From Eutreptiella sp. 'Long Island Sound 2002' (taxonomy: Eukaryota > Protista > Euglenida), in contig OZ038379.1 of the NCBI GenBank assembly GCA_964036045.1, forward strand, positions 15,376,001 to 15,440,000: a stretch of 64,000 bases of DNA, given 5' to 3'. The translations under genes were made by a program, and so were the position numbers. Within the stretch, counting starts at the first letter, position 1; every line of letters starts with the position of its first letter. Below the pieces are notes generated by a model. The model searched no databases. It was not told the DNA's origin and saw only the letters and a list, made by a program, of their open reading frames with translations. Positions 37,780 to 62,930 of this stretch are shown here, piece after piece.

Positions 37780-38244
37780 TCAGTCATCGATGTCGGACCC
37801 CGAATCGTCGTCGTCGGACTCATCGTGAATCCGGTACCCGCTCAATCGCATCTGCTCCGCCACCACATCCCCATTTTCTCGCTCCCGGACCTTCACCCGC
37901 ATGAACGGCCGGTCGTGCCCGATGCCCTGCGCCTGCTCCCGCTTGCCGCGCCCCCAGTACTTGTGCGCGACCTGCCCCGGCGCCTCGTCCTCCGCGACCC
38001 GCGCGGTCAGCCACGGGTGCGCCAGGGCCGCGCCGCTGCCGGGCCGCTCGAAGGGCTTGAGGGTGCACAGCGCCGCCACGAAGCTCTTCGCCTCGGCGGA
38101 CAGGCCCTCGCCGCCCCGGAACGACAGCGGCGTGGCCATCTCCCGGCGGAGCTCGCGGAAGTTGGTGGACTGGAACGGGAGGCGGCCGCACAGCAGCGCG
38201 TAGAGCATGACCCCGAGGCTGAAGATGTCCCGTTTGAAGACGAT
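37780..38244 (-). CDS. Kinase gene exon 9 (terminal; subdomains IX-XI and acidic tail)
   Basis: ccctccag|IVFKRDIFSLGVMLYALLCGRLPF...ERPGSGAALAHPW...DESDDDDSGSDIDD*. Confidence 0.92.
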   Translation of the reverse strand: MVFKRDIFSLGVMLYALLCGRLPFQSTNFRELRREMATPLSFRGGEGLSAEAKSFVAALCTLKPFERPGSGAALAHPWLTARVAEDEAPGQVAHKYWGRGKREQAQGIGHDRPFMRVKVRERENGDVVAEQMRLSGYRIHDESDDDDSGSDIDD

Positions 38245-41200: not shown

Positions 41201-44200
41201 CCGGGTGGCTTGCTGTTGATTGTACAGCGTATGCAGAAAATGGATGACTGTGCAACAAAGGGATGAATCAATGGCGAGAGGCTTCATACCCACAGAATTC
41301 GACTGTGCCCCGTCTGGGCGTATGGCAAAGGCAAGCGTACAACACGCAGTGTTGCTGAACTTCCATGCGAGTGTATTTGGCACAGCGGCCTGAAAAATGT
41401 GTCGGAAATTTCGTACGGATTTGATACGCCAAACATCCCACAGTGAAAAACTCCCGCCGCGAACCCCCGCCACCCCCCGCGCCTCCCCACCGCATGTGCT
41501 CAGCCAATCCAAAAAAAAAAAAAACAGGAAACAGGGCTCTCCCTCGGCGCCTGACCCCTCCGAGAGCGCTATGCCTGCTGAAGCGCAGCCGCCAAGGCAC
41601 ACCATCCGTTAAGTGGTGTGTGGAGGTGGTCCGGGGCTTCCGTGAGAACGTCCCATGCATTGCAGTGGCCGGTGTGTGTCCATGCCTTTGGGGGACCCCC
41701 CCGCCCCCCGCTGCCCTTCGAAAGTGCGATTCGATAGTTTGCGCTGGGGCGGGGTCTGAGGGAGCGGTGGCGAGGGAGGGTGGGCAGATGCTCCTTCACG
41801 CATCAAGTCTGGATAGGAGGTGGACACTCGAAGCGAGACATGTGTGCCTCCGAGGGGGGGCATAACGGCTGAGTCTCGGAGGGTGGGGGGTCGTAAGGGC
41901 AAAACCGCAAAACCGAAACGCACATTCGGCACATCGCAAACAAGCCGCTGCCTGGACAGTGAACAGTGGCAGTCAATGGCTGTGCACCCTCGGCACAGGG
42001 CAAACCAAATAGCATGTGCAGGGGGGGGGGGTCGACAGGCCTGGCGGGCAGACGGACAACGCCCGTTCATGTGCGGCACGGTACGCCATGGCCCCGTGTG
42101 TGTGCCACCGTCGTACCACCAGCGCGTCGGAGGCCCGGCCCGGACCACACCCGACCAGAACAGACCCGATGTCGGGAACAGCGAGGGAGAGGGCCGGCGG
42201 AGGGAGCAAAGGCAACGGAAGGAAACGGGGAAGGGGACGAAGGGGAAGGGGACGAAGGGGAAGGGGAAACGGTTTGGAGAGTGAACGGGTGCAGCGCAGG
42301 GGGGACTCTGGTCAAGGCGGGGGGCTGCGTGGCCGCCCCCCGTACGGTGGCGTGGCATGGCCTGCCGATGGTCGCCGCCCTATGATAGCCCTCGTGGTCC
42401 ACGATGAAGTGTGCCGATGTGACGACCGGTGGGACTGGTACGTCACGCATGCCCCAGCCATACGTCCAATGCAGCCCTCCTCCCGGGGCACATGGAGGAG
42501 CAGGTGCTGGGCGAAGGGGGCATGGGTCTCGGACCACGGAGGAGAGGGGGCAGACCATGCGTTCCGTGGAGGCTCAGGGATGGGGGACGACTGCTGCCCG
42601 TCGCCGGGACGGCCAATGGGGACCATGTGGGGCTGACTGTTCGGAGCAGGTTCAGGTGGCTGTCGCTGCGTAGGGCGGGCACACTGATGGCGGAGGTCCG
42701 CCGCGGTTCTTCGGCGCCCGGGGGAGGGCCTATGTACTTGGACAACCCGAAGTCGATGACGTACACGCGCATGGCTCCTGCGGGCCGGGGGGGGGGGGGG
42801 GGCGTTGCGAGGGCGACACGGGTGAACCGGCGGGAGAACGGGCACAGGACGCTGGGCATTGGCAATGGGGCGTTGTCACACGCGGGCTCATGCACGGATG
42901 GCGGCACAGTAGTCCCAACCCCAGCCCTCAAACCCTCCGCTTGCCTCCGGTGAGGCTAATACTTTTACGTCCTCATCAATTCTCATTTGATGCATTCATT
43001 TCCCCTCTTGCCCAAGATACCGCCAAGTCCCAAATTAATACGGCACGTACACCCCCTGTATCTGAGACCCGGTGCATCTTGTGTGCAACAGCTAAAAGTG
43101 CCACTTCGAGGCACTTGGACGCAAGCCGCTCCAGTGCCATTTGTATTCCATCGCCTTCAACGGATGGAATGAAAGCCGAATTGATGCAGAAGGGTGAACC
43201 AAATTATCATCGAACCGGTGCGACTCACCCAACAACCGAACATGCATACACAAGAAGCATCTTGGCCCGCATTGGGGGGGTTGCCATAGAAGCTGCGTGC
43301 AGGTAGGCACTTCGGCGAGGGTTCATTGGGGGTTGACCACCTGGTCAACTATCGTATGCCCAGCAGCGTCCCGGAGAGAACATGGGGGGCAATCATGTGG
43401 CATTCCCCTGAATATTCAAAACGTGTGCTCTTGCGTTGGTTTTGGTGCGCGGCACAAAGATGCACTGCTTCTCCCGACAAACCAGAGCAGCAAATTATTC
43501 TCAAAGGAGAGCGGAAATCAGGTACGGCGTTTGGTTAAGGGCACCTTGAATCAGAATGCATTCAGATTGCTGGAGGCTGCTGAATGGCTGCCGTTGATTG
43601 CCGAAGAAAGGTGTGCCTGGAGGCTGCTAGATGGTCAATGACATTTCCTCGAGGCAAGCTGTACTTGCAAATTCCCGGAGGCAGTGGCAAGGGCACGGCA
43701 AAGGAGCAAAGTCCATCTCCAATTCAGAGTGCCGCATAAATCCTTAAAAAAGCCAAACAACCCATCGACAAAATGGTTGTGCAGAATTTGTCCAACAGAA
43801 TCTCTCGCTCATGGGACCCCCCCCCCCTGCCTTCGGTATGGCGACCCTGCAAAATCCCTAAATGCCCTGAAACAAAGCCATTCTGGGGCTGCAGTCGGGT
43901 GAAAACACTTTACAAGAAAGTGACCCGGACCCTCCAGGAGGCTGCAAAGGGGTCGCTCGGCTCGGAAGGCGATGCGGCATCCGGCAGAGACACACTGGAC
44001 CAAAATCTGCTGCAGGGCCATACCGTTCTCTTGGCCAATGATGATGTTGTCCAGCTTCAGGTCGCGATGCACCACATGTACCGTGTGGTGCAGGTAATGC
44101 AGGAACTGTAGCACCTGCAGCGCCAGCTGCTGCACCTGCCTCTCCGGCACTTTGCGCTTGCTGAGGAGGTAGTCCACGAGGTCGCACTCCCCGGCGTGCC

Positions 44201-47200
44201 CCATGACCAGAAACACATCCGTGCGAGTCTGAACCACCTGCAATGGGGGGGGGGGGAGGGGGGCTGTCCGAGTGCCTCAGAGTGGCTTGAGAATGTGGCT
44301 GCAGCTTTCATTCGGTTTCATATCGACGCAGTGCGTTATTGGGGGGGCCTGAAAAGCGAAAAGGGGGGGGGGGTCTGCCTCGGGTTGTGTCGGTCTCCAG
44401 ACTGGTGGCCCATTGACCGCCGACGGCCCTTCGCGGTGCATCGATTGCGGTTGGCAGTTCATCCGACGCGCACAAAAGGCCGGGGGTGGGGGTTGCTTAA
44501 GAAAAAGGGGGGAGAACAGGGGAGGGGCGGGGGTGTCTCATCAAGAACGCTCCTGCGGTTCCTGCCGATGTGGTAGTCCACAGTTTTCTAGAGCACCGTG
44601 TGACCGCACAACATGTGACATGATGCTGCATCGTGCCCTTTGGACTCCGTGCCAATGCCCGGCATGGTGCATGCGGTTTGGGCGGAACCAACCGTGACTT
44701 GCGAAAGGGCGGGGGGGGGCTCCCAAGCCTGCGCCACACACCTCATACATCCGCACGGTGTTGCGGTGGTCCAACCGGAAATGGATGTCGATCTCCTGCT
44801 CAAGCACCTGCACTTTCCCGGGGGTCTTCAGCTTCTTCTTGCTGACGGCCTTCACGGCCCGAGGCTGCCCGGTGCGCTTGCACTCGGCGGCGTAGACCAT
44901 CCCGAAGGCCCCTTGCCCCAGGAGGTCCTTCTTGAGGTCCACGGAGTAGTAGTCCTCCAGGCGGTTGATGGCTGAGGACACCGGCACGGGACATGTCGCA
45001 CTCCAGGGGACCGGACCCGCGCCGGTGGGGGCCACAGAGTTCGGTCGACCAATGCGCGACGGGGGGGGGGGGGGCAAGATACTGACGCCCGATTCGCATG
45101 CCCCCCACACCTCCTACCGGGACCCCTATGCGTTGCAGGGACAACGGCCCGTCCAGCACGCAGCACATTGCCTACCAGCCTCTATGGCACAGTACCCCAG
45201 GTTCCAAGCATCCCCCCTGAAGCGTCTGCCACTATGCCACAAGTAGCCCCTCGAAGGTGAGCGCAGCCACTGCCAGACCCATCACAACCCTCATGCCTGG
45301 GTACGTTAAGAGCGTCAAGCGTTGAAATCTCTTGCTCACGAGGTTGCAGGCCGCACGGCTTTCACGGTTGAGAAAGGCAATCATGTACAATGCGAGGTCA
45401 TACTGCAGAGGACACATACGGGGACTTGGGAACAAATGCAGGCAATAAGCACGGCCACAGGCACTTCCACACACACACACGGGGGACTGCAGAGGCTCGC
45501 AGGGGCACAGGTTTAAAGAGCAGTCAGCAGAGGCACACGCAGAACAGGGCGGTCCTTAACGGAAAAAAAAAAGTGTTCCGGAACCAGTTTTCCCAAAAAA
45601 GCCCGCGGGCACTCCATGTGCTCAACCATGGTTGGTGGCGGTTGGCGGTTGGCGGTTGGCGGCGGTTGGCCATTGGCAGTTGGCAACTGGCAGTTGGTGG
45701 TGGTTGGCGGCGGTTGGTGGTTGGTGATTGGTGGTTGGTGGCGGTTGGCAGTGGTTGGCAGTTGGCGGTTGGTCGCCGCTGGTGGTTGGCGGCGGTTGGT
45801 GGCTGACGGTTGGTGGCGGTTGGCGGTTGATGGGAGTTGGCGGTTGGCGGTTGGTGGTCCCTTGGGGCGGTCCTTAAGGGCGGTCCTTGGGGCGGTCCTT
45901 AAGGGCGGTCCTTAGCAAAAAAAAAAAATCTGGTCCCTTAAGGACCGCTCTGACGCAGAATCTCGGGGATACGCGAAAAAGATGTTACCCCACGCACCCG
46001 TGGGAGCATACAGAACACGCACATAACACAAGAATGCACCATGAAGGTACAGGCACAAGGCCGGGACTTGTCACAAGCACAAGCATCAGCAACATCATTG
46101 GACGTACGGGCAGTTCCGACGTACGCTATGCAGTGGACGAGTGGTATGCCAAGATGCTCAGGGGTCCAAAGTGCAATTACAAAATCGACAAGCGTCGCCA
46201 TGCGATGAAAAAAAAATCAAAAAAAGGGCATGTACGGCCCTGAGCATCAAATGCATCCGATGCTGTGCGACGGGACTGGTGCAGGTGCAGGCACAGACCC
46301 AACGGCACCATCGCACAAGCAGGACACACAATGGGACGAGCACATGCAAGTGGGTGACAGGGCAGAACACCTGCAATCGGAATATTTTTGGCACAAAACA
46401 GCGCTTGCAGATGCAGTTCGGATGCCTCCGAGCCCAAGACAATGGCGTCGCAGAGCAATCCTCACAGATGGTGCGACCGCAGCGTCGGCACCAGTGGCGC
46501 CACCGCAGCAGCCCAAAGGAAGCGGAGCACACCAGGCACTTCTCCACCTGCAAAGGACACCAGAGGACAACCGGTACACAAGCAGACACGGAGACACAAA
46601 AGGGAGGCGGGGCTTGCGGGTTTCTCGGAGCACACATGCCAAAAGGGGGAAGCACCAAACACGGAAACAGGGATGGATATAGGGGGTGGTTTTTGCACAG
46701 CGCCAATTATTGCACTGTTTATCCCGGTAATACCTCTACAGTAATACGGTAATACCCACTTTTACGTCACTTTTGTCCAAAAACATGTATTGGAACCAAT
46801 ATATGTGGGCTCCATGTGTGACAGGCATTGGCGTTAGCCGCAGCCGCATTAGCCAACTAGCCGCAGAGGTAAAGAAAATGGGGGAAATGGAAAAAAGGGG
46901 GGAAATGGGGGAAATGGGGGGAAATGGGGGAAAATGGGAGAAAATGGGGGGAAAAGGAGCAAAATGGCCAAAAGTACTCAGTGGGAAACGTAGAAAAAAT
47001 GTGTGAAATTCGTAGGAAATTGGAGGAAAATCGGAGAAAAATGTGATAATTTGGGACAAATTTCCCAGTTTTCCCTGTCCCATTTTCCCCATTTTTCCAC
47101 AGCCTTGCCACCTTTCCCTCAGGTGCCTTTGATGAATTTTGCTAGCCGAACTGGCCGACTGGAAAAATGGAATTTTCTGACTGGCCGATAATGGCCGATT

Positions 47201-50200
47201 TTTCGGCTAGCGCCGAGGCTTGTAAAGAACACATGAAAATACAACACAAGTAAAGGTCACATGTGGAGCATTCGGAAGTGTCCCTTTTGCCGCAAACTTG
47301 GCAGAGATAGGTATCGTCGTCATCCTCATCAACCTTAGGGGCCACTTCCTCTGACCTTCTAGTGAGAGCCCCACCACTGTGGTAGGAAAGCGCACCCCAT
47401 TGGAGCGGGTGTAGAACACCTTGTCTCCAACATTGAGGTGCATGGTGAACGCAATAGAGGGTCTAAGGCTCAATCATGGTCGGTAACAGATACTGGATGC
47501 CCCCGCCCAGGCAGTTCCAGCCAATTTTCCAAGAGTTCCGCACACAATCAAACTGCTATGCTACATCCAGAAAGAAGTAAGATACAGCCTGTCATGTACA
47601 GCATATAACGTGTGGTACCGGGCGAAATGCAAGTACCTGTCAAAAGCAGGCAATGCAGACAGCACCCGGTCTAAGGACATGAGGGGCAACATATGATGTC
47701 CCGCGGCAGACACCCGAGAATGTATCCCCACAAACCCGGCTCAGGGTGCCCGTTTCCAAAGGTACACACAAGCAAGGGAGGGGAAATGATGCTACCATTA
47801 TGCACAATGGCAACGGCACACTGTGACAATGCTGTGTGGGTGCCCATGCCAATCAGACACCCCCAAAACTGGCTACTAGTGGTGGAAAATAGCCGACTAT
47901 TCGCACATCGCGCACACAGCGCATGGTGCGCCCCCATAGTATAGGAGGGGGGTTGCCCCCCACCCCACCCCCCCAAATGATGAAATGACGATGACTAAAT
48001 TAGGCCAGCCAACACATACATCTTCGCGTTCAGCACAGCCCGCGGATCAATTTGATGGGCCTCATGACATTTTTTGAAAGAAACTTTTTTCGGGATTTTT
48101 AGTACTTTTGGCCCTTCAGAAAAAATATTTGGCGGCTTTGGCGGCAAAATTTTCCCTTTACCATGAGACATCAGAGGGACAAGAGTTTCGTACTCGTCAT
48201 TTCGTCGTCTCGGGGCCCTCAAAGCCCCCACCCCCCTGACCCCACGAAAAGAATTCGGTCACTATCCATCCCTGCACAGAAACATGTGTCTGCCCATTCC
48301 CACACCTGGACCCGCAAATCTTGTATGCTTAACCTTGCACGTACCAAGTAGTGTATCTGCAAGGCAATCACCCCATAATTGTCACGGCATCACTGAGACC
48401 AATGTGTGCAGAACGAACGCACCCTCGAGGCTCCCCCTCCTCGGACCTTAGGCTGATGCATCAGGGGCACTTGGCACGAGGGACCACCCTGGAGAATGGG
48501 GAGCGCAGGGACTTGAATAAGGCCCTCTTGGGGGCCTACAACTCCACAGTCTCCAAAGGTTTGGGGCTCTGTTCAAAACCCTCTTCGTTGGGTTTCGGAT
48601 TTCACAAAGTCGGGGGGCGCCTTGGGGGCTGTACCCCGTGTGTGACATTCCGTCGGGTTGCTGTTTCTTTCCTGGGCCCTGGACAGTCACCCGTTCTTCC
48701 CTTCACATGCTGCGTTGGGTCGCCACGTTCTATTGGCCGCTGCAGCCTGTGTTCCTGCTGGTGTCGTTTCCGCATCAGCAGAGCCCGGTAGTTGGCGCAC
48801 CGGGGTTGTGCTGGTTGGTGCAGGGGTCGTTTTACGGTTTTCACTGCCCACTCCCCTCCGCACTCAGGTGGTCCACCCCATGCCTCGCTGCGTTGCCGTG
48901 TACGTGCGGCCCAACACTTCCCTAACGGTCCAACCTGCGCCGCAGGGGTCCCTTTGGTGGCCCAAAGGGCGCTGTATCCCCTGCGCGCGCCACCAACAAA
49001 GGGATTCCACGGCGCTGCAGGGGTCCCTCCGGTGGCCAAAAGGGCGTGGCATCCCCTGCGCGCACCAACCCCTGTGGTGACCGCCGGCTATCGCGGTAGG
49101 CTCCGTGGCCGGATACCTGTGCGGGTTCCACTTGTGGCGTTGAAGTCCGTGACGCATCCTGTTGTGCGAAAAGGCGCCCCCCCAAAGTACCTGCAGCACC
49201 CGTCCGGATGTGCTGCATTTATGTGTTTGTGTGCGTGCAGCCACAAACTCGGAGTGGTCATGTTCTGTGGAACAGAGGTGACCTCCCCCATTGCATCCTC
49301 CTCTGCTCTGTCACAGTGTCACAGTGTCAGACACCAGCCACGAGATGTCTCTCCTGCGTCCGCCCCTCCCTCCCTCCCTCTACGTGCAATCACGCACGCC
49401 TGCACAAGCCGTCTCCCCCCTCCCCCTCCACCTCCCTCGCGGTCACCTGCTTATCCACGCCAACCCTCCGGTTGTTGAACTTCGGGCCATAAAGACACTC
49501 ACCGCACATCTTTGCAGTGTCGACAGAGTGCGGCTTTTCCACGAGGCATTTGTGGCACCGGATGCGGTCGCACTGCGAGCACTTGTACTGGGGGCGGAAG
49601 AAGGAGAAGGGGCTTCCACATCCATCGCAAGAGTCATCGTCCTGGTCATCGGCCCCCAGGGCTGTGGACGCCTCTGGGCTGCTGATCACCTGAAAGCGCA
49701 TGTCGCCATCCACAGCACCTCCTGCAGTACTTCCCAGTCCCAGTTTTGAGGGTCCCGTGCATGAGGCGCTCCGTCCCCCAGTGGCTGAGTGAGTGCGACA
49801 GACCTTCGATCCGTGCGTTTAAGCTGCCATTCAGCAGAGAGAGCGCATGCGTGCACGATTTTGCGTCGCGACCGTGAGAGAGATCCGCTGCAGAACATCT
49901 CTACGGGTACCGCCGCTGCGCAAAACCATGCGCGCACGCGCCCTACCCTGCGGAATCGCAGCACAAGCGCGATTCCCTGGCACCTTCCGCACGAGCAACA
50001 CCGATGAGGCCCCGGGTGTTGTTCATCTGCACGCGACAGTCTGGCACACACCACCACAATTGGAAGGCAACTGCCCCAGCCCCCCCCCCCCCCCCGCCTC
50101 GCCGCCGCCGGACCGCTTTCGCAACCGTTCCGTGATAATACAACTCCATTCTGCAAACCCCCCGCCACAACCCCATGGGCGTGAGGCCGGTGCATACACG

Positions 50201-51428
50201 GATCCGGGTGACCTGCACACCCGCGGAGCAGGTGCAACCGCTGCAGCGGAGAACAGGGAAGCCGGAGTCGCCAGAAAGGCGTCCGTGCCTACCTCTTCCC
50301 GTTGGCCGGTCACACGGCAACCGGCACCAGACATGCGGCACGTGTCTGGAGCAACAATCGGCGCTCATTAGAGATCACCCCCGTGTCATGCACGGCCCAA
50401 CAACGCGGCCGGGGCATGTACAGCACTCCGCAGGACTCACGCACATCGCATGCGTGACCGAGTAGACCTCAGCTCTCCCCATCACCTCTCAGTACCCGGA
50501 CACCAGCGGCAAGTATGCCCATCACGCCCACCAAGTCGGGCAAAGGAAGGCGGAGGCCTAGTGCCCAATCCGGTCCCTCTCCAGGGGTTTTGCTTAACCG
50601 CCGGGGGGGGCGGGGGGATGATGTGAGATACCCACCACTCCTCCACAGTGTTGGAGAACCCAGGGACTCAAAAATATCCCACCCCCACGGGGGCGGGGGG
50701 GGAACCATTCACTGAATCGTGCGAGTTCATCCAGAATTCCACCGCCAAGGGAGGGGGGGGAGGGCTGTTGGACACCCACCCGACCACCCACCCACCCAGG
50801 CATCCCAGCCACTCACCCAAAGGCAAAGAGGGGCAAGAAGTTTCTTCCGGCGCCTTCGGAGGAGACCCACACGCCTCCCAAAATGACCCACCACCACGGA
50901 GGGGGCGGGGGGGGGGGGGGATGGGTTGACACCCACCCACCCCCGGAATTCTGAAATACCCTTCCAGGGGGTCGGCCAAGCCAGACGCACCCAGCCCTCT
51001 CCACGCCCCCCATCGAGATCCCATACCGCATGGCTGCTGGTCATTTTAAATGCGTCCGCTTCATTTTGATGGGGAACGCCGCCCTTCCCTTTCCCCTTTG
51101 CACAGTGGCGGCAAATGCCGGTGGGCTGCGTGCGCTCCAGCTGCAGGACGGGGGAGCTGCAGCAGTCCGGACACAGCGTGCTCCCGCACTTCGGGCACCA
51201 AATACGGCGCACCGGCTCGAACTGCCGGTCACAATGCGCACACTGTGCTGCGGTGCAATCCAGCCCGCGCCTCTCGGCCCGCATTTTTCGATGCCGCCGC
51301 TGCTTCATTCGGGCCACGGCCTCGAACTCCGCAGCAAGGCCCCCAGTAGCAGCTGCGCTGGTGGAACTATCAGCCTCTGAGTCCGGATCCATGGAATCGG
51401 AGGACTCCTGCTCAACATCGGGTGGCAT
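37780..51428 (-). CDS. Triple FYVE-like zinc finger, F-box and CAMK-like Ser/Thr kinase; 9 exons, about 780 aa
   Basis: join(51027..51428, 49447..49689, 46371..46547, 45279..45402, 44742..44971, 44024..44237, 42556..42777, 39823..40088, 37780..38244) = 2343 nt, with all GT-AG introns and consistent phases (0,0,0,1,0,1,1,0). Kinase motifs: GQGAFGMV, AVK, EIDIH, HRDLKLDN, DFG, CGTLRYCAPE, DIFSLG, RP...ALAHPW. Confidence 0.85.
39823..40088 (-). CDS. Kinase gene exon 8 (end of insert and APE)
   Basis: ttggcag|GC GSRNG...LCTPCGTLRYCAPEVLAVSGHYRKIPHE|GTATTG. Confidence 0.85.
42556..42777 (-). CDS. Kinase gene exon 7 (DFG and start of the long insert)
   Basis: cccgcag|GA AMRVYVIDFGLSKY...; phase-1 donor CAT G|GTCTGC inferred from the phase of the next exon. 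Confidence 0.8.
44024..44237 (-). CDS. Kinase gene exon 6 (subdomains V-VIb)
   Basis: cattgcag|VVQTRTDVFLVM...VVHRDLKLDNIIIGQEN G|GTATGG. Confidence 0.92.
44742..44971 (-). CDS. Kinase gene exon 5 (subdomains I-IV)
   Basis: tcctcag|CC INRLEDYY...LLGQGAFGMVYAAECKRTGQPRAVK...EQEIDIHFRLDHRNTVRMYE|GTGTGT. Confidence 0.92.
45279..45402 (-). CDS. Kinase gene exon 4 (F-box-like motif)
   Basis: cctctgcag|YDLALYMIAFLNRESRAACNLVSKRFQRLT fits the F-box pattern. The phase-1 donor is ambiguous: GT at 45278 or GC at 45296. Confidence 0.7.
45628..45856. repeat. Degenerate (GGCGGTT)n / (GGTGGTT)n G-rich array, followed by GGGCGGTCCTT repeats
   Basis: About 30 heptamer-like units. GGGCGGTCCTT occurs at 45547 and four times at 45863-45913. 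Lies in the kinase intron between the FYVE3 and F-box exons. Confidence 0.9.
46371..46547 (-). CDS. Kinase gene exon 3 (FYVE finger 3)
   Basis: cctttgcag|VEKCLVCSASFGLLRWRHWCRRCGRTICEDCS...CICKRCFVPKIFRLQ|GTGTTC. Confidence 0.88.
46690..47940. mobile_element. Degenerate copy of the Harbinger-like transposon family (composite), in kinase intron 2
   Basis: Blocks at 46695-46815, 47225-47330 and 47780-47935 are direct repeats of 51870-52030, 52046-52190 and 52380-52530. The minus strand at 47220-47345 reads DEDDDDTYLCQVCGKRDTSECSTCDLYLC, like the tail at 25540-25700. Confidence 0.65.
48630..48860. mobile_element. Dispersed SINE-like repeat family, copy 3
   Basis: Core GGACAGTCACCCGTTCT at 48681-48697 plus matching flanking blocks. 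Confidence 0.75.
49447..49689 (-). CDS. Kinase gene exon 2 (FYVE-like finger 2)
   Basis: tttcag|VISSP...CDGCGSPFSFFRPQYKCSQCDRIRCHKC...MCGEC...VDKQ|GTGACC. Confidence 0.85.
51027..51428 (-). CDS. Kinase gene exon 1 (FYVE-like finger 1)
   Basis: MPPDVEQE...CAHCDRQFEPVRRIWCPKCGSTLCPDCC...ICRHC; donor GCG|GTATGG; AG acceptor-like site (tgtcttag) 11 nt upstream of the ATG. Confidence 0.8.
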
Positions 51429-51859
51429 GGCGGGGAATACTAAGACAGCACACGGAATTGTATGTGACTGCAGGGTGCAGTTTCATCAGGTAGCAAAAGC
51501 ACTTGCCAAGAGTTGTGCACAAGGTGTCATTCACAATGTGCACGCAGAGTAGGCGCAAAACAGAACCAGTGCCTATTCTGCAAACCGACAAGCTTTGCAA
51601 CATGAAGCAACAGCCCCCACCCACAAAAAACCCTCCTCTTGGTCTTCACATACCAGAGGGTCCACCGATTGCCTGATCTTCACGGGACTGGAGTACGGCG
51701 GGTGAAAACAGCATTTTGGGGGGGGGGGGGGGTTCGAGCCACACACCCTCCTTGTTTACAGTAGGGGGGCGTTGGAAAAGGGAGTCCTGTGACTGAACGC
51801 ATGTTTTGCTCCAGAAAAGCGCTGTTTGGGGTCAGTAGGGGGGCGTTTTCGCACAGCGC

Positions 51860-54347: not shown

Positions 54348-54388
54348 TTTGCACAAGCAGAGCACAAGAAAACTGCACAGGACTTGGG
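54348..54388. repeat. Split direct repeat B2 (3' terminal, 41 bp)
   Basis: TTTGCACAAGCAGAGCACAAGAAAACTGCACAGGACTTGGG, identical to 54693-54733. Confidence 0.95.
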
Positions 54389-54626
54389 ATGGCAGTACTG
54401 AAGTATCACCAAGGCCGGAATTCCGGCGGTTGTATGGACGGGTGCGCTGCGGACCACTCCGCTGGATGCGGGACCCCACTCTGATACGGACCCTGACCCT
54501 ATACCCTGGTCCACACGCTGCAGCACGGTTAGATCCCCCACTCTACCCGAGGGAATCGGTTTCAAAAGGGACAGGAAAGGGCAGGTGCTCTCAGGGGGTC
54601 AGCCGGTCAGTGGGTGGGTGGGCGGG

Positions 54627-54733
54627 CAAAGACAGGAAAACTGCCTAAACATTGGAGACGCAAACAAAAGTTGAGACGAGGCACAACTAGTGTTTGCACA
54701 AGCAGAGCACAAGAAAACTGCACAGGACTTGGG
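54627..54733. repeat. Internal B1-A2 junction (copy of the predicted circle junction)
   Basis: The 66-bp A copy (54627-54692) directly abuts the 41-bp B copy (54693-54733): ...ACTAGTG|TTTGCAC... Confidence 0.92.
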
Positions 54734-54984
54734 TATTCATTCTCCGCTGTACCCAGATCCCACACCACAGGTCCCACATCCGGTCCAAGCCCCAGAGGAA
54801 TGTGAACTGAGGTAGTATTCAAGCAAAAGGCAAAGCAACAGAAGCAACCCCCCCCCCCCCCTCGACAACCAGGGGACCCGCCACCGTGCACTGCTGACCC
54901 GCATCTTCCCGAGACACGGCGCCGCGCTCAATGGCAGAGGCCAGAGGCTGAAGTGGAGGGAGGTCAGGAATCGTGTCTTGCACC

Positions 54985-55700
54985 GGGCCCAAATCAGCAA
55001 CGCCACCCCCGGCGGACCCCTCCAGCGGCCGCGCCGCCCGGACAGTCACCACAGTGGACAGACACAGGTGGTCACGACGGTCATCGTGCCCCACGAACAG
55101 ATAAGGCGGGTAAATCGCACCAACCGGCCGTCAGCCCCAGCCGGACGCGGAGTGAGGTCGGCCCAAAAAGGTATCCGCCATATCCTGGTATCCACCACAG
55201 GGTCCACAACCTAAGCCCGGCGGTCTCCTCCAGCGGCCACGCCGCCCCGGACAGCCACCACAGCGGACAGATACAGGCGATCACGACGGTCGCCTTGCCC
55301 TGCGGACAAAGAGGCGGTCTAATCGCACCAACCGGCCGTCAGCCCCAGCCGGATGCGGAGTGATGCTGGCCCAAAAAGGTGAATAAATAAACACCCAGCG
55401 GCCGTGCAGCCAACCATGTAAAAAGATAACACAACAGGCGCACCCAGCGGCCACGCCGCCGGAGTCAACCTCTGCAGAGGGCAGATACAGTCGAGCACGA
55501 CTGTCGCTGAATCTCACAAACGGTAAAAGGCGGCCAGTCCTCGCACCCGGCCTTCAGCTCCAGCGGAATGCGGACCGACGCGGCCCAAAAATACAAACCC
55601 AAAGTAGCACCCAGCGGCCAAGCCGTCAGGGACACCCACTGCATCGGGCAGGCACAGACGACGACGACAGTCGTCAGACCTCACGGGTTGAAGAGGCGGG
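54985..55700. repeat. About 3.5 diverged tandem units of 170-210 bp in the 3' region of the YR element
   Basis: Recurrent blocks CCAGCGGCCACGCC (about 55020, 55230, 55444, 55612) and CGGCCGTCAGCCCCAGCCGGA...GGCCCAAAAA (about 55124, 55334, 55550). Confidence 0.85.
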
Positions 55701-56190
55701 CAATTCGCAACACCAGCCCATACCGGGCCTGGATCCATATATAGGGTACAGCAACCCTGCGTCCCTGGTTCCAGTCCGTTAGGGAGGCCACCGCGACTCC
55801 CCCCGGCAGCCTTACCTCCCAGACCTGGCAGCAGGCATGCCGCCCTGGGGGCTTGACGCTGCGGCCGCCGGGGGTCGTGCGGCGGTGCGGCGTGCCTCCC
55901 GCGCGCGCGGCCACGTCCCGGACCGCCCGTTCCAAAAATCCCTCCCTGTCGTCAGGGAGGGGGCACTAGGGGCACAGGCGCACCCCGTTGCCGAGCAGCA
56001 CCCGGCGGACGGGCAGGCGCGCCAACCTGCCGCGAAGGCGGGTGCGGAGCACGCTGCTCCACCTCGCCGCCCGGCGCTGCTGGGCGTCCGCGGAACGCTG
56101 GTGCCGTTGTCCGCCATGGCGACCCTTTCGGTGGGCTCCACGGGAACCCCGTCGCTTGTGGGCGCCACGCGAGCCCCGACGCTTGGTCAT
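55681..56190 (-). CDS. Putative accessory ORF4 of the YR element: Arg-rich basic N-terminus, interrupted by one TAG (55966-55968)
   Basis: MTKRRGSRGAHKRRGSRGAHRKGRH...RLCP*CPLPDDREGFLERAV...LFNP*. The duplicated 9-codon repeat differs only at synonymous sites. Confidence 0.55.
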
Positions 56191-56284
56191 AGGTGCGGAC
56201 AGCAAAAGAAAAAGGTTGCTACATGGAGGGCGCATGCTCTGCCGCCGCTGCTCTGCTGGGGGGGGGGGGGGTGGGGGGGGGGGG

Positions 56285-57700
56285 CTAGCATCCCCGGAGA
56301 CACACCACCCCCCTCACCCTAGCCTCGCCCAGATTCTCCAGCAATGCATCCCACGTGCACCAAGCCTGGACTTCCGCTCTGGCCTGCGAGCCTCCGAACA
56401 CTGACGTCACCCTGGACATAGGGTCTCCCGGCTGAAGCGCCGAGGGCACCCACACGAGGCGGAGCACGATCCCCGATACCCACAGGATTCTAGCCAATGA
56501 CCGAAGGACCGTTTGGTGGTGGGTCAGGTGGCTAGTCGCGCGCAGCCTTAGGACCTGAGCAATGGCTGCCTCACTGTCGCTACAGACCGTAACAGATCGG
56601 TGTCCCGTCCTGACTGCAAACCTGACAGCCCACGCCACTCCCCTCAGTTCCGTGGTTTGCTGGCTGGCGAAGCGGGCAGGAGGTGTCACATGCGTACGCA
56701 CACCCACTCCCGGCACGAGCGCCCGAACCCTCCAGCACCCCGCATCGCGCGCTCCATCGACACAGATGACGACGCCCCCGCACCACAGAGATGATCGCGA
56801 AAGCCTATCCTCAGTCCCAAACTTGAGGGTCCTCAATTGCCGCCAGGCCTCCCCGCCCGGCGCCTGCCAGGGCTCGGCCGCCAACGCCACCAATGTTGCG
56901 AGGCTGCCCAGCATTTTCAGGGGGAAGCCCTGGGCCGGCTGTTTGACCCCCCCCACCGTCCTACCCCAGCGCAACCAGCAGTAGGCTCCCGCCGCGAAAG
57001 GGCAACCCAATCCCCTCGGACGCACATGCCAATTCAGCAAACCCAGGAAGCTTTGGAGGTGCCGGTCGTTGCCTGCGCCAACCGCCAGCCTCAGCCATCC
57101 CGCCCACAACTGGAGCAGTGCTTGTTCATGGCTCCTGATCCGCCTGGCCTGCAAGTCGAGCTCCTTCCCCAGGAATGACGCCACAGGCACGGGGTCCAGG
57201 ACACTCTTAGGACTTATGAGGAAACCAGCCTCGATCAGGGCACGCACTGCCACTCGCCCCGCCTCCCTGAGCACCTCCCTATCAGTGAAGACGAGCAAAA
57301 AGTCATCGAGGTAGTGCACAAGGAGTATCTCGGGGGGCAGTACCCCCTGGAGAATGCGCGCCAAACTCGTTTGGCACAGATAGGGGCTGTATTTCCAGCC
57401 AAACGGTAGGCGCGACAGCGCCACAGGCGGAGCCCCGGGGGCGGGCCGGAAGCGAAAAACCCGGCGCGCACCCTGGGGCAAGCAAAAGCTCCAGAACGCA
57501 TTTTTGAGGTCAATGTGGAGGCCGTAGAGGTCCACATCAGGCGGGAATGCCGACAAGGACCTAGCCAAATCCTCCCGGGAATCCAATCTAAAAGTGGGGG
57601 GCTTGCCCCCGTCACTCTTGTTGATCTTGACGCAACTCAATATCAAGGAGACCTTCTCGGATGATTTGGGGATGACGAAGGGGTAACACGTGGGCGGGGG
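56285..57700 (-). CDS. Reverse transcriptase plus RNase H (DIRS-type) of the YR element
   Basis: PTCYPFVIPKSSEKVSLIL...PPTFRLD, HIDLKNAFWSF, RLPFGWKYSP, VHYLDDFLLV. RNase H: VDGARD, QTTELRG, CSDSEAA, WVPSALQPGDPMSR. The frame begins at the C13 run (57696-57708). No DAM methylase domain is visible. Confidence 0.93.
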   Translation of the reverse strand, partial: PPPTCYPFVIPKSSEKVSLILSCVKINKSDGGKPPTFRLDSREDLARSLSAFPPDVDLYGLHIDLKNAFWSFCLPQGARRVFRFRPAPGAPPVALSRLPFGWKYSPYLCQTSLARILQGVLPPEILLVHYLDDFLLVFTDREVLREAGRVAVRALIEAGFLISPKSVLDPVPVASFLGKELDLQARRIRSHEQALLQLWAGWLRLAVGAGNDRHLQSFLGLLNWHVRPRGLGCPFAAGAYCWLRWGRTVGGVKQPAQGFPLKMLGSLATLVALAAEPWQAPGGEAWRQLRTLKFGTEDRLSRSSLWCGGVVICVDGARDAGCWRVRALVPGVGVRTHVTPPARFASQQTTELRGVAWAVRFAVRTGHRSVTVCSDSEAAIAQVLRLRATSHLTHHQTVLRSLARILWVSGIVLRLVWVPSALQPGDPMSRVTSVFGGSQARAEVQAWCTWDALLENLGEARVRGVVCLRGC

Positions 57701-59951
57701 GGGGGGGGTCAGCCGGCTCCTCGTAGACCCCCGCCCCCCTCAACGCCTGCACTATCCTCTGGACCTGCTGCGACACCCATCTGGTTGCCCCTCGGACCAC
57801 CCTATCCCCGTCCTGCCACTCTTGCTCGACGTCAAAATCCTGGAGCCCTCCGTGGTAGAAGGGCGGTACGACAGCGTCCCACAGATCGTCCGGTAGCTGG
57901 TGGGAGCCTACCGGTCCCAATCCCCAGTCCAAAATGGCATCCTCGACCCCCCCCATGAACCGCGGAATGGGGGAGGTGTTGATATGGAGGCATGCCTCCC
58001 AGGCGTCCGGGTGGAGCTTGCGCAAGGCGCCCAGGAGAGCGGGCAAAGCCCCTTGCAAGCGGAAATCCTCGGCTGTATCGAATACTCTATTCAACCACAA
58101 ATCCACCCTCTTCGCAACCATCCACAAGCCACAACGTTCCCGCTCGGCTATCCAGTGAAAATGGGGGGTGATCGCCTGCATGAACTCCAGGAAGAGGGGG
58201 GGCTGTTCCTGCACCCTCCCACCCCTGTCGGGACCCTTACAGCGGGGGGGGGGCGACGCCACTGGGCCCGCCCTCCCCCAAGCCTTGGCCTTGAGACGCT
58301 CAGCTGCAGCCACGAAGGCACCCTCCACCGGGCCTTGCGCCTCCGGCGTCCGGACACGCCCGCCCTGCCCGAGCTTGATGCGCTTGGGCTGCGGCGTTCC
58401 GATCTGCTGGGCCAAACGAGGTCTCCCAGCTTGACGGCGTGCGGGGGCTCGGGATCGCACGGCCTGCGCACCATCCAGGACCACCTTAGCGCGACGCGGC
58501 CCCGCGTATGTGCGGTAGACACGGCCCACCACTCCAGCTTTCGAGCCCGCTGCGGGCCCTCCTCTGACTGGGCCAACGGCTGCCCTGGAGGACCACGGCT
58601 TACGCTCTCGTCCAACGAACCTGGCAATTCCGGCCTGTCGACGCCCGGGGGAGCCCCTGGCGCTGCCGACTGCGAATTCGCCAGAGGGCTCGCTTCCGGA
58701 ATCCTCGCTGTTGTCGTCGGTGTCCACGTCGGAATCGACCTTGATGGGTCCGGCTGCCGTCCCCGGCCCGCACGCCCCCCCCCCCACGGCCACCAAAGGC
58801 CCCGCCACCGTGCACAGCTGACCCGCATCTTCCCGAGACACGGCGCCGCGCTCAATGGCAGAGGCCAAAGGAGGAAGTGGAGGGGGGGTAGGAGCTGTGT
58901 CAGGCCCCAGGCCCACCTCAGCAGAGCCGTCCCCCGGGGATTCCTCCAGCTCGGCCGCGGTTTGGTCTCCGTCGCCTCCTCCCCCAAGCGTGCCGCTCGC
59001 AGCGGATTCCAGCTTCTGACCTCGCGGAAGTCTCGGCTTGCGCCTGGTCGGGGTGTTGAGGGCGCTCGCGATACTGGGGAACATCGGGGATCCCCACAGG
59101 GCCAGGACGCCCACGCGTTCCGGAGTCGGCAAAGGCCCCTGGTCACGGGACCATGCGGGCAGCACCGTAGGGGCAACGACTCCCGGGTCTGACCATTTGG
59201 TGCCGTATTGCATCGCCACGGCCGTGCTTTGCCATCTGCCCCACCATTTGTAGTAGGCGAGGTCCGGCTTACGGGCCCAAGTCGCTGCGGCGCCTCCCCT
59301 GCGCAGGGCGTGCCACCTGGCCCGGAAGTGGGCGGTGCTCGCCAGGGCGTCGGCCATGCCCGCCTCCAACCCCGCTTCCCCTGACTGCCAGACGAGCATG
59401 TCTGAGGACCGGCCCAGCAAAACCATGTGGCCATGAAGCCACGCCCGGACACTGTCCGCATACCTGTACAGGGGGCGGGTGGTGTACCCCTCCTCCACTG
59501 TCTTGGAGTTCCAAAACTGGACAAAGCCTGGCATAGCCAGGTCAGTAACCCTGATGCCAGCTGCTTCGCCCACCCGCAGGTAGCATACCCAGCTGATGAT
59601 GGCCAATGCGCTGAACACTGCTCCGTGTCTGGAGTCTCTGGCCTTTTCGACCAGCTGGACCAAGCCTGCTGGGGACAGATAGGGCTGAGAGCCCGAGGAT
59701 GCGGCTCCCGCCGCGATCCGCTTGTGCAAGGTGGTGACTGTTGGGGGCAGCCACTGGAGGTCCTCCACGGCTCTGACCGCGGAGGTAATACCCCGCAGGG
59801 CTGACGCTGTAGCGCCGGCTTGCGCCCGCTCCGCCAGGAGGCCTGCCAGTGCTGCGGCTGTATCAGGCGGGCCCGTGCGGTCCGCGTAAGCCGCCAAGGC
59901 CCGGAGTCGGGACGCGTACTGCGAGCGGGTTCTCGGTCTCCAGGACTGCAT
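57612..59951 (-). CDS. Tyrosine recombinase plus long linker and RT N-terminal region
   Basis: The catalytic R-K-H-R-W-Y set is intact: LRVGE, NSKT, WHALRRGG, WGRW, MQY. The frame is open upstream to the gag stop. The C-terminal WVSQQVQRIVQALRGAGVYEE resembles the start of a DIRS RT. Confidence 0.93.
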   Translation of the reverse strand: MQSWRPRTRSQYASRLRALAAYADRTGPPDTAAALAGLLAERAQAGATASALRGITSAVRAVEDLQWLPPTVTTLHKRIAAGAASSGSQPYLSPAGLVQLVEKARDSRHGAVFSALAIISWVCYLRVGEAAGIRVTDLAMPGFVQFWNSKTVEEGYTTRPLYRYADSVRAWLHGHMVLLGRSSDMLVWQSGEAGLEAGMADALASTAHFRARWHALRRGGAAATWARKPDLAYYKWWGRWQSTAVAMQYGTKWSDPGVVAPTVLPAWSRDQGPLPTPERVGVLALWGSPMFPSIASALNTPTRRKPRLPRGQKLESAASGTLGGGGDGDQTAAELEESPGDGSAEVGLGPDTAPTPPPLPPLASAIERGAVSREDAGQLCTVAGPLVAVGGGACGPGTAAGPIKVDSDVDTDDNSEDSGSEPSGEFAVGSARGSPGRRQAGIARFVGRERKPWSSRAAVGPVRGGPAAGSKAGVVGRVYRTYAGPRRAKVVLDGAQAVRSRAPARRQAGRPRLAQQIGTPQPKRIKLGQGGRVRTPEAQGPVEGAFVAAAERLKAKAWGRAGPVASPPPRCKGPDRGGRVQEQPPLFLEFMQAITPHFHWIAERERCGLWMVAKRVDLWLNRVFDTAEDFRLQGALPALLGALRKLHPDAWEACLHINTSPIPRFMGGVEDAILDWGLGPVGSHQLPDDLWDAVVPPFYHGGLQDFDVEQEWQDGDRVVRGATRWVSQQVQRIVQALRGAGVYEEPADPPPPAHVLPLRHPQIIREGLLDIELRQDQQE

Positions 59952-60086
59952 GGCACTTTCCTCCGGTGAGCAGGGGTCGTCTGACCGAGCTGCTGTCTCC
60001 CACCGGCGGGCGACCGCCCGCAGCTCTGCCGCCGTGTCCGCAACGCCGGAGCCCGGGGCGGCCAGTCCGGGCTCCAGTCGGCCCTG

Positions 60087-60719
60087 TCAGGACCAGTGTG
60101 GGCATCTAAAGTGCCAGTGGCGTTCGTCGGGGGAGCCCCGCTGCGCGCACCTCTGGCACCCCCCGCTCGGCGGCGAGTCCACAGGGATCCACTCGCCCTG
60201 CCTCGACTGCCATTGCAGTACTCCTCCCACCTCCCTGAATTTCACGCTCCGCCACGTGAACGCCGATCCTTGTTCCTTCCATGCCTCCTCCAGCGTGGTG
60301 TACTGGTTGGACTCGGAGCTGGTTTTTCCGTGCGTCCCTGCATACCTTCGGGCATATGCCGCCTGGGACTGGGACACGCAGTCCCAGACCCTCCACGCCA
60401 GCTGCTCTCCTGGGTCGACTGCGGCCTCCGTCGCCTGGCCGCCAAACCCACTTGGTCGGGGGATCTCCCCCACCTCACCAGCTCTAAGGCGCACGTACGC
60501 CTTGATGTTGGACAGCATGAGTCTCATCCACTGTGCCAACTGGGGCTTCTCGAGGGCTCGGTTTACTTCTGGTACGCTCAGTGGGGGCAGGCGGGGCCCC
60601 TCCTTCACTGCCACTCGGGCGAGTTGCTCTCTGAGTTCTTGAATTTCTTTGGCTTGCGCCGCCAGCCGCTCCTCGGCTGACTCGTGCTGGTTCTGGCTAG
60701 GCTGCTCAACCCCGTCCAT
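60087..60719 (-). CDS. gag-like ORF (coiled-coil N-terminus, C-terminal C-X2-C-X9-H-X4-C finger), 210 aa
   Basis: EERLAAQAKEIQELREQLARV is coiled-coil-like, and CQRCAQRGSPDERHWHFRC is the finger. It is the first ORF after repeat A1. Confidence 0.8.
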   Translation of the reverse strand: MDGVEQPSQNQHESAEERLAAQAKEIQELREQLARVAVKEGPRLPPLSVPEVNRALEKPQLAQWMRLMLSNIKAYVRLRAGEVGEIPRPSGFGGQATEAAVDPGEQLAWRVWDCVSQSQAAYARRYAGTHGKTSSESNQYTTLEEAWKEQGSAFTWRSVKFREVGGVLQWQSRQGEWIPVDSPPSGGCQRCAQRGSPDERHWHFRCPHWS

Positions 60720-60732
60720 GGGTTAACAAAAA

Positions 60733-60798
60733 CAAAGACAGGAAAACTGCCTAAACATTGGAGACGCAAACAAAAGTTGAGACGAGGCACAACTAGTG
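60733..60798. repeat. Split direct repeat A1 (5' terminal, 66 bp)
   Basis: CAAAGACAGG...GCACAACTAGTG, identical to 54627-54692. Confidence 0.95.
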
Positions 60799-60816
60799 GT
60801 TTAGGAGCAGCAAGCA

Positions 60817-61751
60817 GGCCGGGTACAAGCAGAGAATAAGTCATGGTGGGCAATAGAGGTCCTGTAGTTGAGGGACACCATTCCCTCACAACCTGCTTTA
60901 CAAATTTGCTCACCCTTACTTCAAGATACATCACAACAGCCCCTCATTTCCCCAAACCTTTCACCTAAAACCGCGGTTCTAGAGCCCGGTACCTAATTAC
61001 GTACCTATGAATTAGATCCTCAAAAATACGGTCCGAACGGAAGTGTTCATTGGACACAGTGTTCGTTGGACACGGGAGGGGGCGGGGGGTACAACAATGC
61101 AACAAGGAACTTCGGGGACAGATTTTTTTGCGGTGGGTCAACTACATTATTTGGCACAACCAGTCTAAATTTGTTAAGCGGGAAAGAAACCAAAGTGGCT
61201 ACATAACGTTTGTGAAATGTCTGAACAGGCATTGACAAAATTTTTCAGCCCCATCGAAAAAAACAGGGCAGTTTGACCAAACTATACCCCGCATTGAGAA
61301 TTCGAACGCCCCCCCCCCCTAGCCCCTGACCAACCTTCATCCTTTGAGCACTCGGTTGTATATGTAGCTTGGACAAGGGGTGCTCTGGAGATCCAGTGCA
61401 GAGTGTGCAGTGCAGGTGCCTCCTTCTGCCCTGCAAGTGCTTGTCTCTGACGTCTTCATCAAAAAGCCCCACACGTGCTTCTTTCAGCCCCCAAACAATC
61501 TAGTCCACTTGTGGTGCCCAAACGGATGAATACAGCTCATTTTGAGCCCCTTTTGAGCCGCCCTCATCCACTTTCCTGTGTACCTCATTTGTGGTTGCAG
61601 TCTCCTAGACGATGTTCCCTCCCGCACCAGCTTGGTCCCAATATCCAATCCTGGTTAGGGTTAGGGTCACCGAGCTGGCGGAACCAGTCTTGGTTTTATA
61701 ACCCTCTTTAGTGTCTAGGGTGGACCTACCAGGTTTAGGAGCAGCAAGCAG
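60817..61751. repeat. Direct repeat copy 2, including the empty integration site
   Basis: 60817-61732 matches 53413-54347 and continues into GTTTAGGAGCAGCAAGCAG (61733-61751), which also occurs at 60799-60817. Confidence 0.95.
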
Positions 61752-61790
61752 CAAGCAGCAAGCAGCAAGCAAGCAAGCAAGCAGCAGCAC
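61741..61790. repeat. (GCAA/GCAGCAA)n microsatellite
   Basis: gcagcaagcagcaagcagcaagcagcaagcaagcaagcaagcagcagc. Confidence 0.9.
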
Positions 61791-62813: not shown

Positions 62814-62930
62814 ATTAGGGTTAGGGCTACGGGTAGGCTTAGGTCTTGGGGTAGGGTTAGGCGTAGGTGTAGGGTTAGTACTAGGCTGAGGGTTGGGGTG
62901 GGTGTTAGGGTCAGGGTTGGGTTTAAGGAT
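62814..62930 (+). repeat. Degenerate interstitial telomere-like (TTAGGG) hexamer array
   Basis: TTAGGGTTAGGG followed by about 17 variant hexamers (ggtagg, cttagg, cgtagg, tgtagg, gtcagg and others). Confidence 0.8.

Follow-up and report, generated by a model that had tools for sequence, protein, structure and literature searches.

A recombinase-first tyrosine recombinase retrotransposon with VIPER/TATE-type anatomy, and a single UGA shared with five related lineages

In DIRS1, PAT, and Ngaro retrotransposons, the catalytic domain of the tyrosine recombinase (YR) is encoded 3' of pol (PMC3266345, PMC4157794). DIRS1 and PAT elements carry a methyltransferase (MT) after ribonuclease H (RNase H, RH) and before the YR (PMC3266345; bioRxiv 10.64898/2026.05.21.726589), and DIRS1 also possesses inverted terminal repeats and an internal complementary region (PMC3266345). 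Ngaro elements, known for example from zebrafish, fungi, and Cafeteria, have the arrangement A1-[open reading frames (ORFs)]-B1A2B2, no MT, a gag-like ORF1, Ty3/gypsy-related reverse transcriptase (RT) and RNase H, and integration by YR (PMC8547959, PMC4157794), in the order gag, RT/RH, YR, usually without ORF overlaps (PMC3266345). The VIPER/TATE layout consists of a gag-like ORF and overlapped YR and RT/RH ORFs, with split direct repeats (A1...B1A2B2) and no target-site duplication (TSD; PMC12278014, PMC6681497). VIPER-like elements are known only from kinetoplastids and from few sequences (PMC6681497, PMC12278014, PMC3783388, PMC12440569); the group is defined by RT monophyly, the VIPER RNase H has been reported to be allied to hepadnaviral RNase H, and kinetoplastid-contaminated bacterial assemblies have been mentioned (PMC6681497). 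Here we describe an element with the YR placed before the RT, found in a stretch of 64,000 nucleotides (nt) of contig OZ038379.1 (assembly GCA_964036045.1, positions 15,376,001 to 15,440,000), referred to below as the window. The reading that we favor, at a probability of roughly 0.72, is that of one YR-retrotransposon insertion, of the DIRS order in the broad sense and of VIPER/TATE-type anatomy, in which the UGA of ORF1 would be read through, pol lies in the +1 frame, and the pol of the window copy is split.

Anatomy of the element and comparison with the named groups

An earlier note on this DNA had proposed an element of the order gag-YR-RT-RNase H between 54348 and 60798, and its ORFs, motifs, YR fold, and split repeats are all there (Table 1). 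The insertion interrupts one copy, the first, of a 934-bp tandem duplication, whose second copy (60817-61751) presents the empty site, and comparison of the empty with the filled site reveals no TSD and fixes the boundaries to within 1 nt, one C (sense strand) being common to the element end and the target. The end of the element and the target share a short match, AAAC / AACC on the sense strand. The duplicated unit itself (53413-54347 with 60798-60816, and 60817-61751; 98-100% identical) contains GGTTAGGGTTAGGG and has an (AGCAGCA)n microsatellite after it at 61740-61789, and a third, degenerate copy of the unit is seen at approximately 62577-62826. Along the coding strand the order is A1, the ORFs, B1A2, 238 nt, and B2, and both repeat pairs are identical between their copies, as the note had claimed. 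As B1 and A2 overlap by 4 nt, the internal B1|A2 junction corresponds to the joined ends of the element. The termini are direct repeats, with G/C tracts the only inverted repeats found, and no second match to the element is present elsewhere in the 64-kb window. Four copies of the family (the window copy and those at loci designated L003, L007, and L008) have unrelated flanks, none with a target duplication, and the 5' flanks of L003, L007, and L008 tend to finish in AAAC-C or ACAA-C. Following the accepted model for split-repeat YR elements, the full-length RNA would be reverse-transcribed, the internal B1A2 junction would serve to regenerate the ends and join them into a circle, and the YR would recombine this junction with the target.

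The YR was not matched by any recombinase model of Pfam or NCBIfam, and it was therefore identified from its fold and its motifs. For residues 1-270 of the second ORF, a model made by AlphaFold with 15 homologues (predicted local distance difference test, pLDDT, 77.6) matched tyrosine recombinases exclusively in PDB, over both domains, with lambda integrase at 2e-5, and with Cre, XerA, XerD, and the Tn1549 integrase among further matches; no rve domain was detected in the element by Pfam. The completeness of the catalytic residues, another claim of the note, is borne out for all three enzymes: those of the YR are conserved, and all motifs of the RT and of the RNase H (DEDD) fall at columns invariant in 31 relatives. 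The nearest named proteins to pol are Ty3/gypsy pol proteins (plant, 1e-15, profile search), and the nearest PDB matches of the RT are retroviral and foamy-virus RTs. Pfam RVT_3 is matched by 12 of the 31 relatives, and the hepadnaviral RNase H model PF00336 has sub-threshold matches in six of them (best E 1.5e-4). As pol ends approximately 45 residues past RNase H, no MT follows. ORF1 starts with a long coiled-coil helix and ends with a zinc knuckle, its substitutions concentrate on third codon positions, and residues L29, W64, W112, F161, C188, C191, H201, and C206 are invariant among eight sequences from six lineages (the window family and loci L002, L004, L005, L006, and L026). In all six, the end of ORF1, knuckle included, is homologous and of the form C-x2-C ... 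H ... C, the classic C-x2-C-x4-H-x4-C (CCHC) knuckle being present in L026 only.

With RT/RH of the long terminal repeat (LTR) type, a YR as integrase, and insertion without TSD, the element has the characters of the DIRS order in the broad sense. Likened by layout only, it also has all the structural characters of the VIPER-like elements: YR before RT/RH, overlapping YR and RT ORFs, A1...B1A2B2 repeats, no TSD, and no MT, together with a gag-like ORF1 whose zinc knuckle has counterparts in some VIPER/TATE members (PMC6681497, PMC12278014). The lack of an MT applies to the window family and L002 and fails in L004 and L005. The note's assignment of the YR-before-RT order to VIPER/TATE, and not to DIRS1, PAT, or Ngaro, agrees with the published descriptions (PMC12278014, PMC6681497, PMC3266345, PMC4157794). 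The weak, sub-threshold matches of six relatives to hepadnaviral RNase H may be a further likeness. Differences from VIPER/TATE are that the host of the window element has spliceosomal introns, that a single in-frame TGA along with a pol frame open over the entire YR is not described for VIPER/TATE in the literature consulted, and that the close relatives L004 and L005 encode a Dam-like MT 5' of the YR. With Ngaro the element shares the split repeats, the lack of an MT, the gag-like ORF1, the type of RT/RH, and YR integration, and relatives with a downstream YR (L017 and L018) are its neighbors in the RT/RH tree; it nevertheless departs from the Ngaro layout, because its YR lies 5' of the RT, where a downstream position is expected, and is overlapped by the pol frame. 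Long overlaps between YR and pol ORFs are likewise known from DIRS1 and PAT, PAT-like elements also have split direct repeats, and in both groups a Dam-like MT adjoins the YR, as it does in L004 and L005, where this adjacency is kept with the RT/RH block on the opposite side. The window element also departs from the layout of DIRS1, in which an MT, inverted repeats, and an internal complementary region would be expected, and from that of PAT, in which an MT and a downstream YR would be. Our literature search, Repbase lying outside it, found no description of this clade, of the in-frame UGA, or of a fully overlapped pol.

Relatives, gene order, and the question of VIPER/TATE membership

A profile search of 1.84 billion cluster representatives returned 241 proteins with E < 1e-30, and relatives from ENA, Logan, and JGI were examined. 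A single ENA assembly, ERZ25074135, is the source of all close relatives; its contigs reach 6.5 Mb, at approximately 27-38x according to contig names. Clustered at 90% identity, the proteins of the window family form groups of 79, 31, 27, 25, 19, 17, and 16 members, and the copies, 85-97% identical, occupy unrelated sites; those retrieved are 85-96% identical to the window copy. The family is multicopy, young, and recently active, in line with the youth suggested in the note. Genomic context was available for L002 and L026 (both ERZ25074135), L004 (ERZ28616029), L005 (SRR29454055), and L006 (SRR31154554), and for 17 JGI metagenome contigs. One example is L002, which has the same gene order as the window element, with ORF1 35% and YR 38% identical to it, and whose split repeats, overlapping by 4 nt, measure 88 nt (A) and 41 nt (B), with 100% identity between the copies of each; RT identities for L002 and L026 are 29-42%. 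The L002 element lies within a 215-bp satellite array (L002:4500-5659 and 11710-12466). At L026, a LINE-like (long interspersed nuclear element) sequence encoding an endonuclease, RVT_1, zf-RVT, and RNase H (L026:10341-15703) lies just downstream of the YR element, and at L001 inverted fragments of the same RT (1636-2644 and 7147-7923, both on the minus strand) flank a 5'-truncated copy, which suggests nested or rearranged insertions. No related loci were found in a prokaryote genome collection searched with a six-sequence alignment.

Six-frame searches with hidden Markov models placed the YR 5' of the RT in L002, L004, L005, L006, L026, L009, L011, and L012, and 3' of RT/RH, in the Ngaro-like order, in the JGI metagenome relatives L017 (68-2723) and L018 (2008-4547); both gene orders therefore exist among neighbors in the RT tree. 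In an RT/RH tree of 56 rows with a Ty3/gypsy outgroup, the window family, L002, L004, L005, L006, and L026 are inside a clade of 27 rows (support 98/94), and L009, L011, and L012 form a second, small recombinase-first clade. Monophyly of all recombinase-first elements had a value of 92 in the Shimodaira-Hasegawa-like approximate likelihood ratio test (SH-aLRT) on a quick tree and 44% bootstrap on a careful tree, and is not claimed. Within the 27-row clade, the ORF upstream of the YR in L004 (L004:3-3350) encodes a Dam-like N6-adenine methyltransferase (PF05869, 6e-8, above the Pfam threshold), and so does that in L005 (L005:1080-2753; PF05869, 6e-4), while this enzyme is absent from the window family and L002, ORF1 having no Dam match. 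The resulting order of L004 and L005, MT, knuckle, TGA, YR, RT, RNase H, is found in none of the named groups of YR retrotransposons.

It has to be considered whether the element is a true member of the VIPER/TATE superfamily, in which case the lineage would be older and wider than Kinetoplastida, or the host would be another euglenozoan (a diplonemid or a euglenid), or a horizontal transfer would have taken place, and the finding would amount to a new host range of a known family and not to a new group. The complete set of VIPER-like structural features (PMC12278014, PMC6681497) and the weak hepadnaviral RNase H matches among the relatives, which echo the VIPER report, speak for membership. 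Membership, which we consider less likely than not, is opposed by the Dam-like MT of L004 and L005, which VIPER-like elements lack, and by the introns in the host genes; neither a kinetoplastid protein nor a named VIPER/TATE protein was among the matches, in searches that could not have ranked them.

Reading frames, the window copy, and a shared UGA

The frames of the window copy differ from those of its relatives. The note had described a nearly single frame of 1478 codons, and the arithmetic is right, the span 60719..56285 measuring 4435 nt, or 1478 codons plus 1 nt, but this is not a general feature, as the pol of relatives is in another frame than ORF1-YR and overlaps it. In the window, the RT/RH ORF is +1 relative to the ORF1/YR frame and overlaps the 779-codon ORF at 57646..57612. 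From an excess of third-position substitutions, ORF1, the spacer behind it, the YR, and a conserved stretch at the N terminus of pol (RT-N) share a single frame, to which the RT core is +1; the signal in RT-N, here read in the YR frame, is strong. The linker has no codon periodicity in any frame between approximately 59000 and 58250, a measure that leaves its frame undecided.

What sets the window copy apart became apparent from the alignment of five family copies (the window, L001, L003, L007, and L008). In the coding part, L003 and L001 differ in frame from the window copy only at homopolymer tracts, and L007 and L008 also have a few extra single-base indels; the distinct frame layout of the window copy arises because three tracts differ in length from those of other copies. 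A longer G tract results in an ORF2 of 450 residues, the majority form (P0042, P0045, and P0048, with 31, 19, and 16 members). At the C-rich tract, P0006 (79 members), P0001, P0010, P0019, and P0021 continue from RT-N into the RT core, and the window copy and L003 change frame, so that their pol is not continuous. As assembled, the window copy probably cannot make its own RT and is non-autonomous, unless the tract lengths are assembly errors, and it could be mobilized in trans. Since its pol is interrupted, between RT-N and the RT core, where most copies are continuous, the 'possibly active' of the note fits the family and not this copy. The alternative, that the window copy itself is autonomous, the tract differences being long-read errors or being bypassed by slippage, transcriptional or ribosomal, on G11, C10, and C13, is improbable. 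Its frames do depart from those of other copies mainly at the tracts, the rest being intact, its repeat copies are identical, and the third tract is just as long in L003, a copy of 96% identity; against this, most database copies cross the third tract without a shift, and tract lengths vary among copies by up to 4 nt, above the typical consensus error.

The signature that the window family shares with the other five lineages of the 27-row clade concerns the region between ORF1 and pol. In all six, the YR ORF continues the frame of the ORF upstream of it, with exactly one stop between them, which is always TGA. The YR frame has its first ATG only 122, 126, and 117 codons past this stop in L004, L006, and L026, respectively, beyond the start of the YR domain, and there the YR could therefore hardly be made except by readthrough. 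In the window, the spacer between the TGA and the first YR-frame ATG shows the third-position excess in the ORF1/YR frame. The +1 frame over the YR has no stops in any of the six lineages, where synonymous-codon shuffles that keep the protein and the codon usage lead one to expect 3.6-14.3 (P from 0.0085 to <0.0005), and the stop count of the +2 frame is as expected. In the window these values are no stops against a mean of 4.0 for the +1 frame (P = 0.002) and seven stops, as expected, for the +2 frame. The +1 frame opens 50-416 nt before the TGA, and in L002, L004, L005, L006, and L026 it is continuous through RT/RH, over 977-1293 codons. In the window family and L002, more than 600 nt past the stop are free of ATG in this frame, and in the window its first 260 codons include none. 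As this frame opens before the UGA and is free of stops across the YR, ribosomes would probably gain access to pol through a +1 shift close to the ORF1 end. The ORF1 UGA, as the comparison of the six lineages suggests, would be read through to give an ORF1-YR fusion, and the +1 shift would give ORF1-X-RT/RH.

Recoding has precedents in the gag-pol stop readthrough of gammaretroviruses and in the +1 frameshifting of Ty1/Ty3 and antizyme. The likeness to such retroviral and cellular systems is that one stop closes a structural ORF and that enzymes are encoded downstream in the same or the +1 frame. The difference, as the frames predict it, is that both routes would depart near one stop codon and that the two downstream genes overlap completely. 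ORF1 of the window family ends in UCC UGA, the shift hexamer of antizyme, which the other lineages do not share. The possibility that UGA is a reassigned sense codon in the host was rejected, as no in-frame TGA occurs elsewhere in ORFs of at least 1000 codons. These observations lead us to advance, tentatively and at somewhat less than even odds, a larger proposal: that an undescribed and widespread clade would use one UGA to make both Gag-YR, by readthrough, and Gag-X-RT/RH, by a +1 shift, X being the alternative frame of the YR, with some members of the order MT-YR-RT-RH.

The open +1 frame and the in-frame TGA might instead be by-products of GC-rich sequence, with each protein expressed on its own through re-initiation, internal initiation, or a subgenomic RNA. 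GC content is indeed 58-67%, and 58-74% at third codon positions (GC3), and long spurious ORFs are hence common; the L009/L011/L012 clade, for its part, has TAA stops and one stop in the +1 frame, and an ATG stands six codons past the stop in L009 and L012. This explanation has little to commend it in view of the shuffles, in which stops are expected in the +1 frame of every lineage and the +2 frame is not depleted, of the probability of approximately (1/3)^6 or less that ORF1 and YR would share a frame in six lineages by chance, and of the three lineages without any ATG before the YR domain. Still less credible, to the point of being dismissed, is an artefactual gene order, whether from a Crypton-type YR nested in or adjoining an RT element, a permuted Ngaro/DIRS array or circle, or a misassembly: YR elements do form tandem arrays and circles, and the distant relatives L017 and L018 do have the YR downstream of the RT, but the three ORFs all lie between a single pair of split repeats, and both ends are set by the empty site. 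Gene order and repeat geometry recur together at unrelated loci in L002, L003, L007, and L008, the order recurs in short contigs of other samples, and shared and overlapping frames tie ORF1, YR, and pol to one another. On these grounds we rejected a nested or chimeric origin as well as a permuted tandem array.

Several points weigh against the reading given at the outset. The readthrough and the frameshift are deduced from the arrangement of the frames, no shift-site or readthrough motif is common to the six lineages, in which the codons before the UGA are UCC, UCG, UUU, CAA, CAC, and CAG, and the hairpin past the UGA is not better than in shuffles (z = 0.08) and has no covariation. In most copies of the window family (G12, 450-residue ORF2), both the YR frame and the +1 frame stop short of pol. 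Homopolymers are the least reliable bases of long reads, and the pol break of the window copy may not be real. The likeness to VIPER/TATE is one of layout, set against published descriptions. As to 'gag', the name given in the note holds as far as position and zinc knuckle go and does not extend to a capsid fold: a structural model of ORF1 (pLDDT 76.8) had no match with E < 0.4 in a PDB fold search, and the term is for this reason a label of position.

Table 1. Positions, in the window, of the parts of the element and of its empty target site.
Feature	Position	Strand	Remarks
Whole YR retrotransposon	54348..60797	-	6450 nt; filled site compared with uninterrupted paralogous site
Split direct repeat A1 (5' end)	60733..60797	-	65/65 identical to 54627-54691 (A2)
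ORF1, gag-like by position	60087..60719	-	210 codons + TGA at 60089..60087
ORF1 C-terminal knuckle, C-x2-C ... H-W-x-F-x-C	60158..60096	-	directly before the ORF1 stop
Open +1 frame, 697 codons	58151..60241	-	starts 155 nt before the ORF1 TGA; covers YR and linker
Spacer, ORF1 TGA to first YR-frame ATG	59952..60086	-	45 sense codons; in frame with ORF1 and YR
12-bp hairpin in spacer	60078..60045	-	starts 8 nt past the TGA; invariant in 4 copies
Second ORF, YR-linker-RT-N	59951..57612	-	779 codons; same frame as ORF1
YR, core-binding and catalytic domains	59142..59951	-	fold match and conserved catalytic residues
YR R126	59576..59574	-	conserved in alignment
YR K150	59504..59502	-	conserved in alignment
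YR H214 and R217 (H-x-x-R)	59312..59310 and 59303..59301	-	conserved in alignment
YR W240	59234..59232	-	conserved in alignment
YR Y249	59207..59205	-	conserved in alignment
Low-complexity linker after YR domain	58254..59141	-	includes G11 tract 58785..58775
G tract	58785-58775	-	window 11; L003 12; L007 and L008 one more than window; L001 not covered
C tract, start of RT-N	58253-58244	-	window 10; L001 11; L003 14; L008 12; L007 net +1, interrupted
Conserved pol N-terminal region, RT-N	57709..58243	-	aligns to P0001, P0020, P0040
C-rich tract (C13-G-CCC)	57708-57692	-	window 17 nt; L003 17; L001 and L007 16; L008 18
RT core + RNase H, TAG stop	56285..57646	-	453-codon ORF; Pfam RVT_1 5.9e-13
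RT motifs HIDLKN, FGWKYSP, YLDD	57517..57500, 57403..57383, 57313..57302	-	
RNase H motifs VDGA, TELRG, SDSE, GDPMSR	56761..56750, 56653..56639, 56581..56570, 56428..56411	-	
Non-coding 3' region	54734..56284	-	C12 and C14 tracts, degenerate repeats, linker copy
Split direct repeat B1 (internal)	54692..54733	-	42/42 identical to 54347-54388 (B2)
Split direct repeat A2 (internal)	54627..54695	-	abuts B1, 4-nt overlap
Split direct repeat B2 (3' end)	54348..54388	-	238 nt after A2
Uninterrupted paralogous target site	61725..61751	+	neighboring copy of the 934-bp tandem duplication

The host, the rest of the window, and implications

The part of the element that varies most among copies is the 3' non-coding region. 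In the window copy, the C12 and C14 tracts follow directly after the pol stop (56258-56284), approximately three degenerate 208-bp repeats occupy 55008-55619, and a 176-nt stretch (54851-55026) is a copy, at 83% identity, of part of the ORF2 linker (58775-58950). L001 and L007 are without 0.8-1 kb of this region, and L008 has a 2.2-kb insertion in it.

Two cellular genes of the window are split by introns. One example is a carbon-nitrogen hydrolase, with Pfam positions 1-91 matched at 7075..6662 and 91-255 at 5372..4809 (minus strand), the exons being approximately 1.3 kb apart. Another example is a protein kinase, with Pfam positions 4-67 at 45113..44544 and 65-135 at 44276..43812 (minus strand), the exons being approximately 270 nt apart. 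As these introns are spliceosomal, the host is not a trypanosomatid; it may be an intron-bearing euglenozoan (diplonemid or euglenid). The note had placed the lineage outside kinetoplastids. Further cellular pieces are a kinase C-lobe and a TatD-like sequence (38646..37783 and 21233..20640, respectively, minus strand), and three ORFs within 5.3 kb (51482..50730, 49818..49393, and 46706..46161, minus strand) each contain an FYVE zinc finger and look like a small tandem gene family. One ORF piece of at least 135 codons matches DDE_Tnp_4, the PIF/Harbinger transposase (7.5e-6), and a fragment of another transposon is therefore present in the window. Rfam and tRNA scans of the window gave nothing, no rRNA is present in it, and a relic of the dinoflagellate spliced leader is absent.

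In conclusion, the clade is of greater interest than the single copy, with its conserved UGA, its +1 overlap architecture, and its methyltransferase-first relatives. The literature treats recombinase-first YR retrotransposons as a kinetoplastid curiosity, known from few sequences (PMC3783388, PMC6681497, PMC12440569). This order is now seen in a well-supported clade, which has at least one eukaryote with introns among its hosts. Should the clade group with VIPER/TATE, that superfamily would be far older and wider than has been assumed; otherwise, either the order had two origins or there is a fifth group. The relatives that carry a methyltransferase bear on the shuffling of the modules of DIRS-type elements (MT, YR, and RT/RH). 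With its one conserved UGA and a pol frame that overlaps the YR throughout, the clade presents a testable case of two recoding events from one stop, and of a long overprinted region maintained across deep divergence.

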